Origin: Paramicrosporidium saccamoebae KSL3
Lineage: Eukaryota > Fungi > Cryptomycota
Direction of reading: 5' to 3'
NCBI GenBank assembly: GCA_002794465.1
Contig: MTSL01000119.1
Coordinates: 1-7,767 of the forward strand
Length of the DNA stretch: 7,767 nt
Part shown: in pieces, positions 378-7,767 of the stretch
How positions within the stretch are numbered: position 1 is the stretch's first letter
Layout: every line of letters starts with the position of its first letter
Position numbers and translations under genes: made by a program
Notes under the pieces: model-generated
The model's database searches: none
What the model was told of the DNA's origin: nothing
The model's input: the letters and a program-made list of their open reading frames with translations, nothing else

Positions 378-2114
378 TTAATCCAAGTCTTCGTCGCTCG
401 ACTCTTCTTCCTCGGAAGACATGGCACCGGCAGCCGCAGTTGCGGCCGCTGCGGCGGGAGTAGGTCCTCCTCCTACGGTGGGCTTCTTGGTGCCCGAACC
501 GCCCGTGCTAGGCTTCTTGCGCTTAGCAGAGGCTCCAGTTTCGCCCAGAATGGCAGCCAAGGAGGTGATTCCCTTGCATTCCATGACATATCTTTGCAGC
601 TGTCGAAGCGTGCGCACATTCAGACTCTCAATGTCAAGCTCAATGACGTCCGAGTCGCCTTGGGCCTCGAGTGCCATGCCAGCCTGGATAATTTCCACCA
701 CTCGTCCAAGCTTTTCGGGGGGAAGATTGTTGACCTCAATGCTGAGCTGGCGCTTCTCCTCAAAGGACATGGGCCTCGACAAAAACTCTTCCTCTGTGAT
801 GGGCGCCGAACCGGGTTTGCTCGCGGGACGGGATGCCTTTTTTGGTCGCGGAGTCGCCCCTGCCGTCATGGAGGATGACCTGTTCCTGCGCTTCATCAGC
901 AGAGTATTCAGTTCCTGCTGAAGAGCTTGGATCTGCCGGTTAATTTCCAAAATCTTTTCAGAATCCGAGTCGACATCGTCGTAGCTGGATCCTGCATAGC
1001 CCCATTGAGCCGGTTTCTGTGCCCATTTAGAGTCGAACAGCTTTTCAAAGGCGCGACAAAGGGACACTACATCCGAATCAGGAGCATTGTAACTGTAGCA
1101 GTTGGAGAAGATGAGACGGACGTCACCCTCAAACTGCTCAGCAGTTGTGTATTGGCCTGCTTCCAGCTTACGACGGACTGTAGAGAGATCCATCGGCTGC
1201 TTGATCACGTCGTAATAGTCGGGAATGCCGAGTTTGGCGGGATCCACTGGCTCTAGGAACGGCCACGCAATAGCCAAATGTGCCTTTTTGGTCAGCTCTT
1301 TCAGGACGTTGTTGCAGAAGGCGAGTTCGGGGTTGCTCGTTGAACGCGCCCGGCTACGAGGAGTGCTGGACCCCACAGCATTTGCAAGGCGATGGGGAGC
1401 ATGAGACTCGCGACGAGCACGAGTGGCAGAGAGGGGAGTCGAGGTGCTTCGTTTTTTGTCATCCTCGCCAGGTAGTGGCAAAGAGGTGGGCAACTTTCCA
1501 ATGGCCGTGTTGAAATATTTTTCCAGGGAATGTCCCATTTTGGAGACTTGGCTGTCGGGATGGTTGTATGAGAAGCAGTTTTGGAGCATAAGACGAATAT
1601 CGGCTATAAACGAGTCGGCATCGGCATACTCTCCCGCCTCCAGCTTTTTGGAGACAAGACTAAGATCCATGGGGTTTTTGATAATGTCAAAATAATCGGG
1701 AATATTCAAGGCCAAGGGGTCTACTGGCGCTTGGAAGGGAGGAGACTGAGGATGTCGCTTCAAGCCCTTAAGGACTGTGGCACAATAACGAAGTTGCTCC
1801 TTGACCAGAGCAGGCGACTTGTCCTCGGCACCTGCATCGACCGCAGAAGCCTCGACGCCGGCAGCAGATTCGGTGTTTTCAGCAGCAGTCTCAAGAACAG
1901 CAACCCCAGCAGCAGACTGCTCCGAGGTCTCTGGAACCGAGTTAGACTCTACCACTACAGTCTCTACTATTGTCGTCACCGTCTCCTGAACTAGTTCTGC
2001 TTCGAGTACTGGCTGGACGTCCTCTTTTTGAGGAAGCGGCTTGGTGGGAATCTCTGTATGAACGTCAGTATCGTTCAGGTTGTTGACTTCTTCCTCCGTG
2101 TGCATAGTTAGCAT
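378..2114 (-). CDS. BDF1: BET-family double-bromodomain protein (Bdf1/BRD2-4-like), 578 aa, no intron in the CDS
   Basis: Acidic N-terminus; BD1 at about aa 107-209 (PPF..PVDP..IPDYFDIIKNPMDL..NCFSYN); BD2 at about aa 263-368 (WPFLEPVD..PDYYDVIKQPMDL..NCYSYN); coiled-coil segment; ET domain (MSFEEKRQLS..LPPEKLGRVVEII..IELDIESL..TLRQL); C-terminal SEED-like tail SSEEEESSDEDLD. The start could be Met4 (2105). Confidence 0.95.
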   Translation of the reverse strand: MLTMHTEEEVNNLNDTDVHTEIPTKPLPQKEDVQPVLEAELVQETVTTIVETVVVESNSVPETSEQSAAGVAVLETAAENTESAAGVEASAVDAGAEDKSPALVKEQLRYCATVLKGLKRHPQSPPFQAPVDPLALNIPDYFDIIKNPMDLSLVSKKLEAGEYADADSFIADIRLMLQNCFSYNHPDSQVSKMGHSLEKYFNTAIGKLPTSLPLPGEDDKKRSTSTPLSATRARRESHAPHRLANAVGSSTPRSRARSTSNPELAFCNNVLKELTKKAHLAIAWPFLEPVDPAKLGIPDYYDVIKQPMDLSTVRRKLEAGQYTTAEQFEGDVRLIFSNCYSYNAPDSDVVSLCRAFEKLFDSKWAQKPAQWGYAGSSYDDVDSDSEKILEINRQIQALQQELNTLLMKRRNRSSSMTAGATPRPKKASRPASKPGSAPITEEEFLSRPMSFEEKRQLSIEVNNLPPEKLGRVVEIIQAGMALEAQGDSDVIELDIESLNVRTLRQLQRYVMECKGITSLAAILGETGASAKRKKPSTGGSGTKKPTVGGGPTPAAAAATAAAGAMSSEEEESSDEDLD

Positions 2115-2147
2115 GACAAATTTGGTTTCTGTCTACTCGATAGTCGC

Positions 2148-2270
2148 CTACGCAGGGTTAGTATCTGGAAACCACCCCGGTCTCGAGACTAATGATGAGG
2201 CCTCCTCCGACCTCGGAGTATCCATCCATCATAAGCAGCCACAGGTCTCGAGGGCCGGTTCGACTATTAC
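2148..2270 (-). other. Predicted 123-nt structured intron in the BET 5' UTR
   Basis: Donor AAG|GTAATA at 2270, perfect branch point TACTAAC at 2163-2157, acceptor TAG at 2150-2148, 33 nt before the ATG. The upstream exon has no ATG. Nested inverted repeats lie inside. The donor choice is less certain than the acceptor. Confidence 0.6.
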
Positions 2271-2376
2271 CTTAATTGAGACGGATTAAAGCGAGAAATC
2301 AAACGAGAAGAGTGAGGAGTGCTGACAAAGTCTCCTCTCTACTGGTTGTACGCCGAGAAATGCGCAGCGGACGCCC

Positions 2377-2390
2377 TATAAAGCCAATCG
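2377..2390. promoter_or_regulatory. CCAAT (NF-Y-type) box with adjacent TATA-like element, candidate BET promoter
   Basis: agccaatcg (2382-2390) fits the RRCCAATSR consensus and tataaa lies at 2377-2382, about 110 nt upstream of the predicted UTR-intron donor. Confidence 0.4.
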
Positions 2391-2403
2391 ACCCCTGGTC
2401 AAT

Positions 2404-3630
2404 TTATGTATTCCCGCCAAAATTTGCTTTTGCTATATGCTGGAGGTAGCTTACGGTGAGGCGTTGGGCTGCAGACCGCAGCGACTCGCTCCCCAAAGCT
2501 ACTTTTGGACTATCGGGGTTTCGGGAAAGATATTCCTGGAACCTGCTGGTGGTTAGCTGATAAAATTAAAAAAATCAAACCTTGTGAGAAGCTCTTGTTG
2601 AGCGATGCTCGTGATCCATTTGGATTCCTGAATATTCCTCCTGTCAGGGATTGTCTAAAGTAACTTGGACCAGGTTCTTGGGATGGAGTACTTGGAGAGA
2701 CTCTATGTGCTCTTGGATGGCCTCCCAGGCCTCGGAAATGCCTCTTCCATTCCTCCCCGAAATAGGCAGCACCTGACAGGTCAGTCGACACAGATAGCAG
2801 TACTTTTTTCGACTTACCACCAAGTGCATATTTCATGGCGCTTTTGTATTCAAATAAAGTCTGATTTGCGCCTTTGTCCAAGGGGTCATCAGCCTTGTTG
2901 ACGAGGATAATATCAGCCATTTCTGTGATGCCCTTTTTCAAGCCCTACCAAATTGGCTAAGGAGGATGGGTACCTGCAGCTCGTCGCCGATCCCAGGTGC
3001 AACGAGGAGGATGAACATGTCCACCAGGTCCATGACTGCCAACTCGGACTGTCCCACTCCCACCGTCTCGACCACGACAATGTCGTATCCCGCATCTAGC
3101 TAATCATGGCCACATTTACAGCATGTACATTCACAGAGACGGATTGTATCAAATGTGGAAACGACAACTCCGCCTGAATCGCCATGATTTGGAGATGACC
3201 TGATATATGCGTGTTCCTCGAGCGACAGATATGGCATTCGGGTCTTATCGCCGAGAATTGAGCCGCCTGACCGCACCGAGGACGGATCCACCGTCTATAA
3301 TCAATGGTCATCAGCCACAGCTACGAGGACGGCGAGATGTTTTTGTTGGTCATTAACGAGGAACATGCCGAATCGCTCAATCAAGGTGGACTTTCCAACA
3401 CCGGGTGCGCCTGAGAATCCCAATCTAATTGCCGGCTTGTGGGTGCCCTTTTCTGCAAGAGCGGAGAATAGGTCAGAGACGAGCAGCTGGTCGGCGGGCA
3501 GACGCGACTCGAGGAGGGTAATGGCTCTCGACAGGACATGACGGTCGCCGTTCTGGATCGACTTTGCCATCATTGGGATGTCGCCCGTGCTAAGGGAGGT
3601 GATTTGTCGGACTATCGACTTGCATAGCAT
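2404..3630 (-). CDS. MMAA: MMAA/MeaB (ArgK-family) GTPase chaperone of methylmalonyl-CoA mutase, about 342 aa, 7 exons
   Basis: Exons 3630-3325, 3294-3129, 3095-2974, 2944-2804, 2772-2692, 2654-2581 and 2542-2404 sum to 1029 nt in one open frame. Motifs: [11 protein letters not shown]-loop [86 protein letters not shown]. The N-terminus [15 protein letters not shown] resembles a mitochondrial presequence. The last acceptor is a CAGCAG tandem (2546 or 2543). Confidence 0.93.
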
Positions 3631-4456: not shown

Positions 4457-4536
4457 TAGCGATTATATTTAGAAAGGGTACGCTCTTTAATAGACTTTTT
4501 ATGAGATGATATATATACAAATGATACGGGATTACG

Positions 4537-4680
4537 GTGTGACGTAGAGGATTGATTAGCTGGGTATTTGAGAATGGTTCCCTAGGGTGGAGAAGGGATA
4601 ATAAGAACAATCGATGAAGTGTGACGTAGAAGACTGATTAGTTGGGTGTTTGGAGAAGAGATAATCAGAACAATCGATGA
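4537..4680 (+). repeat. Repeat family A, tandem pair
   Basis: gtgtgacgtagaggattgattagctgggtatttgagaa (4537-4574) and gtgtgacgtagaagactgattagttgggtgtttggagaa (4619-4657) differ by 4 substitutions and 1 indel. Both units end in ggagaagRgataatMagaacaatcgatga (4589-4617, 4652-4680). The second unit lacks about 19 nt. Confidence 0.93.
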
Positions 4681-4725
4681 GGGATAATGATATCTTTGTC
4701 ATTTGAGAACTACTACGTGATTTTT

Positions 4726-4826
4726 GAGACTATAAAATGACTTACAAATTGATATTAAGTGAGTTCCCTTGTCTCCCAAATAAATAATAGTGACAAAGCC
4801 CGTGGTGTTATCCCCACTACGCGACA
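4726..4826 (+). repeat. Repeat family B, degenerate copy B1
   Basis: gagactataaaa (4726-4737) and ccgtggtgttatccccactacgcgaca (4800-4826) recur in the same order at 4877-4888 and 4936-4962; the second block is 26/27 identical. Confidence 0.85.
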
Positions 4827-4876
4827 GAAGGATGATGAGGTCTATATCTTTACCATTTTATGATTATGTTATTTGT

Positions 4877-4963
4877 GAGACTATAAAAGGGTCCGTTGGA
4901 TTGACTGAAGAAATTCTCTTCTCACCTAAACTGGGCCGTGGTATTATCCCCACTACGCGACAA
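4877..4963 (+). repeat. Repeat family B, copy B2
   Basis: 4911-4963 is 52/53 identical to the reverse complement of 7715-7767. Confidence 0.95.
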
Positions 4964-5082
4964 TAGGCGGATGCTGCTTAACCGACCCCGTTGGTTAGCG
5001 ATACTACGCCTCTGCTAAAGGCGCCATTATAGATAACCGCTCTCAATAGTCTCACTTGTCACTCAAACGCCAACAATTACAA

Positions 5083-7077: not shown

Positions 7078-7612
7078 ATGGAGGGACTACAGGAATTTAG
7101 ACAGGAGAAGATGGCCAACATGAGGCCTTGGATGACTGAATTTCTGAACCGGGAACAATTCTCCACTCCCGATGGCTATTCTATGGCGCAGAATCGCATC
7201 ACGGCTAATCTGCGCTACTTCCAGTCCAACTATCTGGTCGTGGGTCTGGTGCTGTACCTCTATTGCGTGTAATTTCATTATGGGTGGGCTAACTTTTGCA
7301 GCTTTCAGCATATAATCCTGGCGGCCATGATGACTGCTCTGGTAGTCTCGTACATCTACACTGCCAATCTCCCCGAGTCGTACAGCGCCCAAGTCGGTGG
7401 AATGACTATAACCAAGAGGCTCCTCTATGTGGGGCTTGTTGTCGTGGGGATTTTGATGTTGATATTCACAAACGTTGGATCAGCCTTTTTCTGGCTGCTT
7501 GGGGTAACCAGCTTGATTGTTGGAGCGCATGCTGCCTTGCACGAGGTTTGGGTTTTGGGTCAACCTAATGTTGTAGGTGAGCGTTGAAACGGATTTTGGC
7601 CAGCATGCGTGA
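7078..7612 (+). CDS. PRA1: PRA1 family (prenylated Rab acceptor 1 / Yip3), about 156 aa, 3 exons
   Basis: Exons 7078-7268, 7302-7545 and 7577-7612 total 471 nt. Introns 7269-7301 (33 nt, gctaac branch) and 7546-7576 (31 nt, cctaat branch). Motifs RPWxxEF, RITANLRYFQSNY, long hydrophobic segments and HAALHE, ending VSVETDFGQHA. Confidence 0.88.
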
Positions 7613-7714: not shown

Positions 7715-7767
7715 TTGTCGCGTAGTGGGGATAATACCACGGCCCAGTTTAGGCGAGAAGAGAATTT
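7715..7767 (-). repeat. Repeat family B, copy B3 (runs off the window edge)
   Basis: Reverse complement aaattctcttctcgcctaaactgggccgtggtattatccccactacgcgacaa equals 4911-4963 except for one G/A difference. Confidence 0.95.

Follow-up and report, generated by a model that had tools for sequence, protein, structure and literature searches.

Background

Introns of Microsporidia and their relatives have shrunk to about 25–40 nt, and a few much longer ones have been kept. Why long introns survive is a question raised by Whelan et al. 2019 (PMC6349667), who described them in a poly-A-binding gene and in RPS23 as highly spliced and about three times the length of the mini-introns. They have an internal conserved region that overlaps a stem-loop, with G-U compensations and UGAUGA/CUGA-like motifs, and a hyperextended duplex between the branch point and U2; the 120-bp RPS23 intron of Paramicrosporidium saccamoebae has "this same internal region" (PMC6349667). 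Here we analyze a stretch of 7,767 nt from this species (contig MTSL01000119.1, hereafter the window), in which a 123-nt spliceosomal intron with a long hairpin is predicted in the 5′ untranslated region (5′UTR) of a BET-family gene. P. saccamoebae is an intranuclear parasite of amoebae and stands at the base of Microsporidia. The locus adds a new host gene, encoding a chromatin reader, and a new position, the 5′UTR, to the long introns, and eight independent uncultured lineages are available for comparison.

Other precedents come from Saccharomyces cerevisiae. Zipper stems are helices with a minimum of 6 bp, located after the 5′ splice site and before the branch point, that begin 10 nt or more past the 5′ splice site (Rangan et al. 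2025, PMC12350175). The limits, modelled on the S. cerevisiae A complex, further include a minimum of 20 nt to the branch point and 42–85 nt of total linker (PMC12350175). In addition, structured autoregulatory introns are reported in RPL7B, RPL18B, RPS22B and RPL30 (bioRxiv 10.1101/2025.03.14.643126, PMC13232506).

A predicted long intron in the BET 5′UTR

The predicted intron spans positions 2148–2270 of the minus strand, on which all features of the BET gene lie, and reads GUAAUA...UACUAAC...UAG, signals that are conserved in position in the orthologues. Its distal 5′ splice site, D1, is GUAAUA (2265–2270) after AAG, with GUA in nine of nine orthologues and AAG in seven of nine. The 3′ splice site (2148–2150) is UAG in the eight close lineages and CAG in a more distant one, and it follows the branch A by 10–18 nt. 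The long hairpin (2177–2258), which is recovered in the minimum free energy (MFE) fold and backed by the z-scores of the orthologues, comprises the helices P1 (ccgg/ccgg, 2258–2255 with 2180–2177), P2 (ctcgagac/gtctcgag, 2252–2245 with 2189–2182) and P3 (augaugg/ucaucau, 2232–2226 with 2198–2192), all paired in that fold, and an apical stem-loop seen in the window fold, CUCCG-AGGU-CGGAG (2205–2218), with an AGNN tetraloop. A first-pass annotation of the window, made from the letters alone, had placed the stems, loop, donor, TACTAAC and TAG correctly, and its four nested stems are the exact MFE structure of 2177–2258 (−32.2 kcal/mol).

Eight coding introns of the window could be delimited by reading frame and homology and measure 29–38 nt (MeaB 30, 33, 29, 31, 37 and 38 nt; GCS 31 nt; a PRA1-like gene 33 nt); automatic models of the MeaB introns were ambiguous, with 456 minimal models. 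At 123 nt the BET intron is thus 3–4 times longer than the local introns, as had been pointed out. The accompanying remark that removal of the hairpin leaves an intron of local size (41 nt) is backed by the comparison of orthologues described below.

Architecture shared with uncultured relatives

A protein search returned many uncultured relatives, and loci were taken where BET is 50–75% identical. Eight close lineages, with BET 60–75% identical, are the window, L002, L003, L004, L005, L006/L007, L066 and L067. They have in common a TATA-like box, a donor, a long hairpin, a motif in its upper part, a CAU triplet, CC.GGG(U), a branch region and UAG. Within this architecture the order of the intron elements is also the same in all eight: the (A)AG/GUA donor, the long hairpin, CCRGGGU, then the ACUNACCC branch site and the UAG acceptor. 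A ninth, more distant lineage (L010, BET 52% identical) has a variant of the same architecture, a 174-nt intron (2210–2383 of that locus) in which a 14-bp C-rich/G-rich stem carries GAUGGAUGGAUGAUGG in its loop.

Spacing within the intron is tightly constrained. Counted from the donor, the first base of the hairpin is +13 for the window and +11 to +17 for its orthologues, with helices of 7–11 bp; in each of the eight close lineages the core of the motif starts between +41 and +46 of the intron. Likewise in 8/8, the distance from the 3′ base of the hairpin (the end of CCRG) to the branch A is 17–19 nt and that from CAU to the end of CCRG is 17–18 nt. Between the motif and CAU is the sole segment that varies in both length (23–38 nt) and sequence, and this segment holds the AGGU stem of the window.

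A search of IMG/VR with the intron pattern returned three chance matches inside unrelated sequence.

Comparative evidence for the hairpin

We compared the folding of the region from +10 to CCRG with dinucleotide shuffles, sequence by sequence. The resulting z-scores are −1.6, −3.6, −0.4, −3.1, −4.8, −3.05, −2.5 and −5.0, with −0.3 for L010. Their mean over nine is −2.7 (Fisher p 8e-9), against control means of −0.84 for exon 1 and of −0.38 and −0.24 for two coding segments of the same loci. The stem sequences themselves differ by lineage (CUCGAGAC/GUCUCGAG, CCUCGGG/CCCGAGG, CUAGCAUG/CAUGCUAG, CGUCCCAUG/CAUGGGACG and GCGGGGAGG/UCUCCCCGC, among others), and the two arms nevertheless match within each lineage. 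Duplexes of cognate arms reach −33.3 kcal/mol versus −21.5 kcal/mol when 5′ arms are combined with the 3′ arms of other lineages, and no other of the 40,320 permutations pairs as well as the true assignment. Covariation in the BET 5′ region of relatives, which the first-pass annotation had proposed to look for, is therefore present.

Two further observations concern individual pairs. In L067, CCAG stands opposite CUGG; this C-G to U-A double change keeps P1 and falls within CCRG, which is invariant apart from it. In six of nine lineages the sense strand is 7–11 kcal/mol more stable than the antisense strand, a bias that arises from G-U pairs and therefore indicates RNA, not a DNA palindrome. 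All four lines (z-scores, arm swap, double change and strand bias) are independent of any alignment and together give alignment-free evidence for co-evolving hairpin arms. Thus, the hairpin structure is real by comparative evidence.

AUG codons and the boundaries of the intron

The distribution of ATG triplets provides a separate view of the same segment. For nine orthologues the flanks were defined as the last 80 nt ahead of the donor plus all sequence between the acceptor and the start codon. These flanks contain 0 ATG in 1,283 nt versus 19.3 expected from composition (P about 4e-9), made up of 0 in 720 nt of exon 1 and 0 in 563 nt of exon 2. The introns of the same nine orthologues contain 46 ATG in 1,222 nt, and the looped-out segment carries 2–7 AUG codons. 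The ATG-free zone extends at least 117 nt upstream of the donor, and in three lineages it ends at donor position +3 (GUAUGG).

Because the intron segment would keep a scanning ribosome from the BET start, it must be removed. The edges of the ATG desert are the proposed splice sites, and the 123-base stretch is very probably a real, unusually long intron. The earlier proposal that BET has a 5′UTR intron, with its splicing predicted, is accordingly backed by the orthologues, by the covariation of the arms and by the ATG-depleted flanks.

Exon 1 of the 5′UTR (2271–2350, its 5′ end placed at about TATA +30) is free of ATG in all nine orthologues. Exon 2 (2115–2147, 33 nt), ATG-free in all orthologues, holds an in-frame TAG. 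Since this in-frame TAG lies upstream of the BET ATG at 2114, the region upstream of 2114 is 5′UTR. The start itself, M-L-x-M, is conserved in seven orthologues, and across orthologues this start codon lies 33–113 nt downstream of the UAG acceptor. A peptide encoded in the hairpin was considered and rejected, as upstream open reading frames from the motif AUGs are conserved neither in sequence nor in frame.

A hairpin that may restore mini-intron geometry

We consider it fairly probable that BET carries a structured 5′UTR intron conserved in position, length class and architecture, in which the hairpin loops out about 80 nt and whose splicing is obligatory. The central ~80 nt fold into a long irregular hairpin that reaches from 11–17 nt past the donor to 17–19 nt before the branch A. 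According to this model, with these bases looped out, donor and branch site would be about 30 nt of single strand apart (linkers in the window are 12 nt from donor to stem and 18 nt from stem to branch A), which would reproduce the geometry of the 29–38 nt introns that this spliceosome normally handles. The hairpin would act like the zipper stem of yeast, and extended complementarity to U2 would strengthen the branch site. Expression of BET would require splicing, in that unspliced mRNA or mRNA made from a proximal donor would be translationally crippled by its AUGs. The model thereby offers a rationale for both features of the intron: the hairpin would restore mini-intron geometry, and an intron filled with upstream AUGs (uAUGs) would have to go. 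Of its elements, conservation, structure, covariation of the arms and the distribution of AUGs are observed, and splicing as such, the bridging, the pairing with U2 and the partner of the motif are inferred.

The proposed bridging role can be compared with zipper stems such as those of RPS17B, RPL7B and others. As there, the BET stem starts 10 nt or more past the 5′ splice site and would shorten the effective distance, and the stem sequences diverge while pairing persists; both the start and the helix length of the BET stems, in the window and in the orthologues, fall within the published values. Differences are that the BET linkers are shorter, that the BET structure is kept over far greater divergence and that the BET intron contains invariant motifs. 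Yeast ribosomal protein genes also have a conserved intronic structure with possible alternative conformers that governs splicing and through it expression; they are of another gene class, and a protein ligand or feedback is not in evidence for the BET intron.

The extended branch site, CAGAUACUA[A]CCC (2155–2167, branch A at 2158), has invariant ACU.ACCC. In the window, CAGAUACUA[A]C would form 10 bp with U2 GUAGUAUCUG, a sequence that is assumed to be universal and is not taken from the U2 gene of P. saccamoebae itself. In the orthologues the complementarity to the same assumed U2 is split into 3–4 and 3–4 bp with an internal mismatch; the orthologues keep CAG 2–3 nt upstream of ACUNAC. The U2 extension is lacking in the two short introns of the window whose branch site is clear (MeaB introns 4 and 6). 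The CCC past the branch A does not pair with U2 but can pair with the G-run of CCRGGGU, a helix that gives no covariation signal because both of its strands are invariant.

By description, the closest known case appears to be the microsporidian long-intron family. The BET intron is found in the same clade, is likewise about 3–4 times the mini-intron length (123 nt versus 29–38 nt) and retained across deep divergence, and its 123 nt compare with the 120 nt of the P. saccamoebae RPS23 intron. It too has a conserved internal region that overlaps a stem-loop and stems that tolerate G-U changes, and in the window its branch site would, with U2 assumed universal, have extended U2 complementarity. 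It may therefore be asked whether BET is a third host gene of this family, a reading compatible with the bridging model, in which the loop would bind a spliceosomal protein for efficient splicing or the excised intron would be a functional RNA. The BET intron fits the published description in every respect that can be tested. In favor of membership are its length, the (U)GAUGGAUGG motif, which is invariant and located at or close to the loop, and the predicted 10-bp pairing of branch site and U2 in the window. However, the likeness is one of description and not of sequence alignment, the U2 complementarity is interrupted in the orthologues, and Rfam has no such family. The host also differs, being neither a poly-A-binding protein gene nor RPS23, and the intron lies in the 5′UTR instead of the coding sequence, with a much longer hairpin. 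Membership is thus a serious possibility, although we would put it at less than an even chance.

Several results weigh against the bridging model and must be set beside the evidence above. The window hairpin on its own is not significantly more stable than shuffled sequence (z = −1.37, with 17 of 200 shuffles as good; z = −1.58, p = 0.06, in a run of 500 shuffles), and for the whole window intron z is −0.40. The comparison with shuffles suggested by the first-pass annotation thus has two outcomes, the window hairpin lying within chance and the set of orthologues beyond it; the significance of the hairpin comes only from the orthologues. In the ensemble of the whole intron, the outer ccgg/ccgg helix (P1) of the window has a probability of 0.01 because the G-run pairs instead with the CCC past the branch site (0.98); in L004 the corresponding values are 1.0 and 0.0. 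When the window helices are projected onto a MAFFT alignment, 57% of cells are paired and 47 of 500 shuffles are as good. Since an alignment based on sequence alone cannot register shifted helices, we used the z-scores and the arm-swap test instead. What is conserved is the general hairpin and not the particular register of the window, whose apical stem is the least conserved part.

Other points on the same side concern the geometry and the taxonomic range. The linkers, with 17–19 nt to the branch A and about 30 nt in total, are below the limits for zipper stems. Two more distant relatives, L008 and L009, show no such hairpin: L008 (BET 56% identical, AT-rich; about 2305–2480) has a GACCGGGGT-TATA promoter and, at the equivalent position, only a candidate 36-nt intron, and L009 (BET 50% identical, GC-rich) has none of the motifs. 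A pure bridging role also leaves unexplained the invariant letters of GGAUGG(A/C)U, CAU and CCRGGGU, as well as the presence of CCRGGGT in the promoter. Finally, splicing itself, the transcription start site and the choice of donor are predictions.

A conserved candidate proximal donor

The CCGGGGU at 2174–2180, in which CC.GGG is invariant, has a double character. Its CCGG is the 3′ strand of P1, and its GG/GU (2175/2174) is a cryptic donor, D2. The first-pass annotation had named a short donor near 2175 as an alternative to the long intron. The site is a real conserved feature, but of the 46 ATGs in the introns 45 are located upstream of D2, so that it is not the productive donor and productive mRNA must use the distal one. 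We suggest that D2 may be a cryptic or regulated site that P1 helps to hide.

This arrangement allows a reading in which the hairpin is a splice-site switch. When folded, it would hide the proximal CCRG/GUR (2175/2174) and present the distal donor; when it is unfolded or its GGAUGGAU loop is bound, D2 would be used or the intron retained, the 5′UTR would be laden with uAUGs and BET would go untranslated. Introns that start at D2, CC(R)G/GU(R), would measure 28–35 nt, the local size, and P1 pairs the 4 nt just upstream of the D2 GU. All intron ATGs but one lie between the two donors, and in some orthologues P1 competes with the helix of the G-run and CCC. Against these stand the details of the site. 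At +3, D2 has A, G or C depending on the lineage, while D1 has GUA in all of them, and D2 lies 16–18 nt from the branch A (9 nt in the distant L010), which is shorter than the about 23–28 nt in local introns with a clear branch site. Moreover, conservation of GGGU is explained equally well by its pairing with the CCC past the branch site, and the two isoforms are predictions from the letters. We regard such a switch as unlikely.

A broader version of this reading would make the hairpin a conserved riboregulator of BET. The fold would set the choice between the distal donor (BET on) and D2 or retention, with 2–7 uAUGs (BET off), and the GGAUGGAU loop would dock a factor. The CCRGGGT of the promoter might in that case couple the control of transcription and splicing, and the intron may stand as the first example of a larger family of long introns in Rozellomycota and Microsporidia that extends beyond the RPS23 and poly-A-binding genes. 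We hold this version, too, to be improbable as a whole, and favor the bridging model.

Invariant words in the hairpin

The motif GAUGGAUGGAUA (2219–2230), with core GGAUGG(A/C)U, lies on the 5′ side of the upper hairpin, and its A.GGATGG.T columns are invariant in 8/8. In the form (U)GAUGGAUGG it is found in or near the loop. In six of nine lineages the core is less paired than the hairpin is on average, and in L006, L066 and L010 it occupies the apical loop. Because of this relative lack of pairing we read the motif as a binding site, and a protein or RNA partner probably binds GGAUGGAU in the upper part of the hairpin. On the 3′ arm a CAU (2192–2194), opposite AUG/GUG of the 5′ arm, is invariant in 8/8; the triplet is fully paired in six of eight and partly paired in L002 and L003. 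Together, the four invariant words (GGAUGGAU, CAU, CCRGGGU and ACUNACCC) provide handles for finding the partner.

Exon 1 contains an element, (U)AAUCCGUC at 2287–2280, that is semi-conserved in the alignment; its counterpart in the orthologues is (U)GAAUCCAC, 13–22 nt upstream of the donor. The element is complementary over 5–7 nt to the intron motif UGGAU/GAUGGAU. As a structural pairing, exon-1 AAUCCAC with the motif UGGAU was rejected: it amounts to 5 bp only and shows no covariation.

A conserved hairpin within an intron could also host a small nucleolar RNA or a microRNA-like small RNA, as the first-pass annotation had proposed among its options, and two or three orthologues have UGAUGG, which resembles a C box. 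Searches of Rfam, however, yielded no relevant match in the window with E up to 1 (one chance match to a long non-coding RNA at 1651–1748) and no match at the gathering score in 11 loci. The C-like AUGAUGG is at least 12 nt from the terminal stem, no D box (CUGA) precedes the 3′ strand and there is no H/ACA box. Furthermore, the arms vary around a conserved loop motif, and a microRNA would show the reverse. We accordingly see only a slim chance of an intron-hosted small RNA.

The AGNN tetraloop

A further suggestion of the first-pass annotation was that cleavage of the AGNN-capped stem by an RNase III of the Rnt1 type could control the BET mRNA. The window does have AGGU on a 5-bp stem (2218–2205), and this tetraloop is found in the window only. 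The yeast counterpart is reportedly BDF2, a gene that in S. cerevisiae is said to be under Rnt1p cleavage and spliceosome-mediated decay. The two cases are alike in being BET-family genes, with one AGNN-capped stem in the window.

Comparison does not bear the suggestion out. The AGGU stem lies in the sole variable segment, an AGNN-capped apical stem is absent from the predicted folds of all eight orthologous introns, and the window apical helix, projected onto the alignment, is 17–50% paired. Rnt1 measures a continuous duplex of about 14–16 bp below the loop. Below the loop of the window, 5 bp are followed by an internal loop (3/4 nt), then 2 bp, a bulge of 2 nt and a further 7 bp, so that the duplex is not continuous. 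The BET loop thus differs from the BDF2 case in being conserved in no orthologue and in having no continuous duplex below it. To our knowledge, AGNN specificity is documented only in budding yeasts and BDF2 is without such an intron. In the literature we found nothing on an RNase III or Dicer of P. saccamoebae, and no protein search was made for an Rnt1 orthologue. Control by RNase III is on these grounds very improbable, the least credible of the alternatives. On present evidence the AGNN tetraloop seems to be a lineage-specific accident and the resemblance to BDF2 coincidental.

Promoter region

Upstream of exon 1, a TATA-like box, CTTTATAGGG (2374–2383), is present in all nine orthologues. 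The distance from the box to the donor is 107–114 nt in nine of nine when TTATAG/TATTTAG is matched, and 109–116 nt with a broader pattern. Further upstream, the block TTTTGGCGGGAATACATAAATTGACCAGGGGT (2391–2422) is nearly identical in eight lineages and probably has a promoter function. In this block an E2F-like TTTGGCGGGAA shares bases with the final codons of MeaB and its stop (TAA, 2406–2404) and is followed by GACC(A)GGGGT; the consensus across lineages is TTTGGCGGGAA-N4-TAAATTGACC(A)GGGGT. Because TTTGGCGGGAA spans the MeaB stop, the 3′ end of MeaB and the BET promoter overlap. A search with the promoter word GGCGGGAANNNNTAAATTGACC gave 35 metagenome and 20 GTDB loci, all of them chance bacterial matches without a following ACCRGGGT.

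In ~80 kb of DNA from the relatives, CC(R)GGGT occurs almost only twice per locus, once upstream of the TATA-like box (2391–2399) and once at the 3′ base of the hairpin (2174–2180). Depending on the lineage, the copies vary in A/G and in the length of the G-run. In L006/L007 a (CATC/CATT)n microsatellite, the complement of a GGAUGG-type repeat, is found at 2060–2130, ~100 nt upstream of the promoter block.

The recurrence of the same word in promoter and intron raises the question of whether the conserved letters are DNA elements, that is, transcription factor sites past the transcription start site, with the hairpin a by-product of palindromic sites. ATCCA/TGGAT is found in both orientations, and the AAUCCAC of exon 1 is the complement of the motif UGGAU. 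Such an origin, however, does not account for arms that co-vary while their sequences diverge, nor for G-U pairs that favor the sense strand in six of nine lineages by the margin given above, and the splice signals and the ATG pattern demand an explanation at the RNA level. We therefore think that DNA elements have only a slim chance of being the source of the conservation.

Gene content and annotation of the locus

The minus strand of the window carries GCS, MeaB and BET, and the plus strand carries a SpoU methyltransferase gene and the PRA1-like gene. In the relatives the order GCS-SpoU-MeaB-BET-Ist1 is kept. The BET coding sequence (378–2114, minus strand) is an intronless open reading frame of 578 aa with two bromodomains and an ET domain, and Pfam PF00439 and PF17035 were matched on BET homologues.

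The protein of this reading frame matches part of a deposited GenBank protein of P. saccamoebae with 100% identity. The GenBank model, of 827 aa (protein P0001), joins MeaB and BET across an "intron" of ~450 nt (2131–2578, minus strand) and translates through several real 29–38-nt MeaB introns in the wrong frame. MeaB ends with the TAA in the promoter block, and BET starts at 2114. The fusion model is an annotation artefact and should be split.

A tRNA scan of the window found none. The PRA1-like gene (7105–7590, plus strand) encodes a membrane protein and has a 33-nt intron, gtaatttc...ttgcag; the list of open reading frames shows its second exon only. Between the genes are inverted repeats, of which 1–150 versus 4537–4680 flank BET, MeaB and SpoU, and 4911–4963 versus 7715–7767, a 53-nt pair that is 98% complementary, flank GCS and the PRA1-like gene. 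A further repeat pairing is 4800–4837 versus 4936–4973, with extra direct copies in the 4460–5080 spacer, and a (CCTCTA)n-like run lies at 112–139. The intergenic repeats look like a dispersed repeat family.

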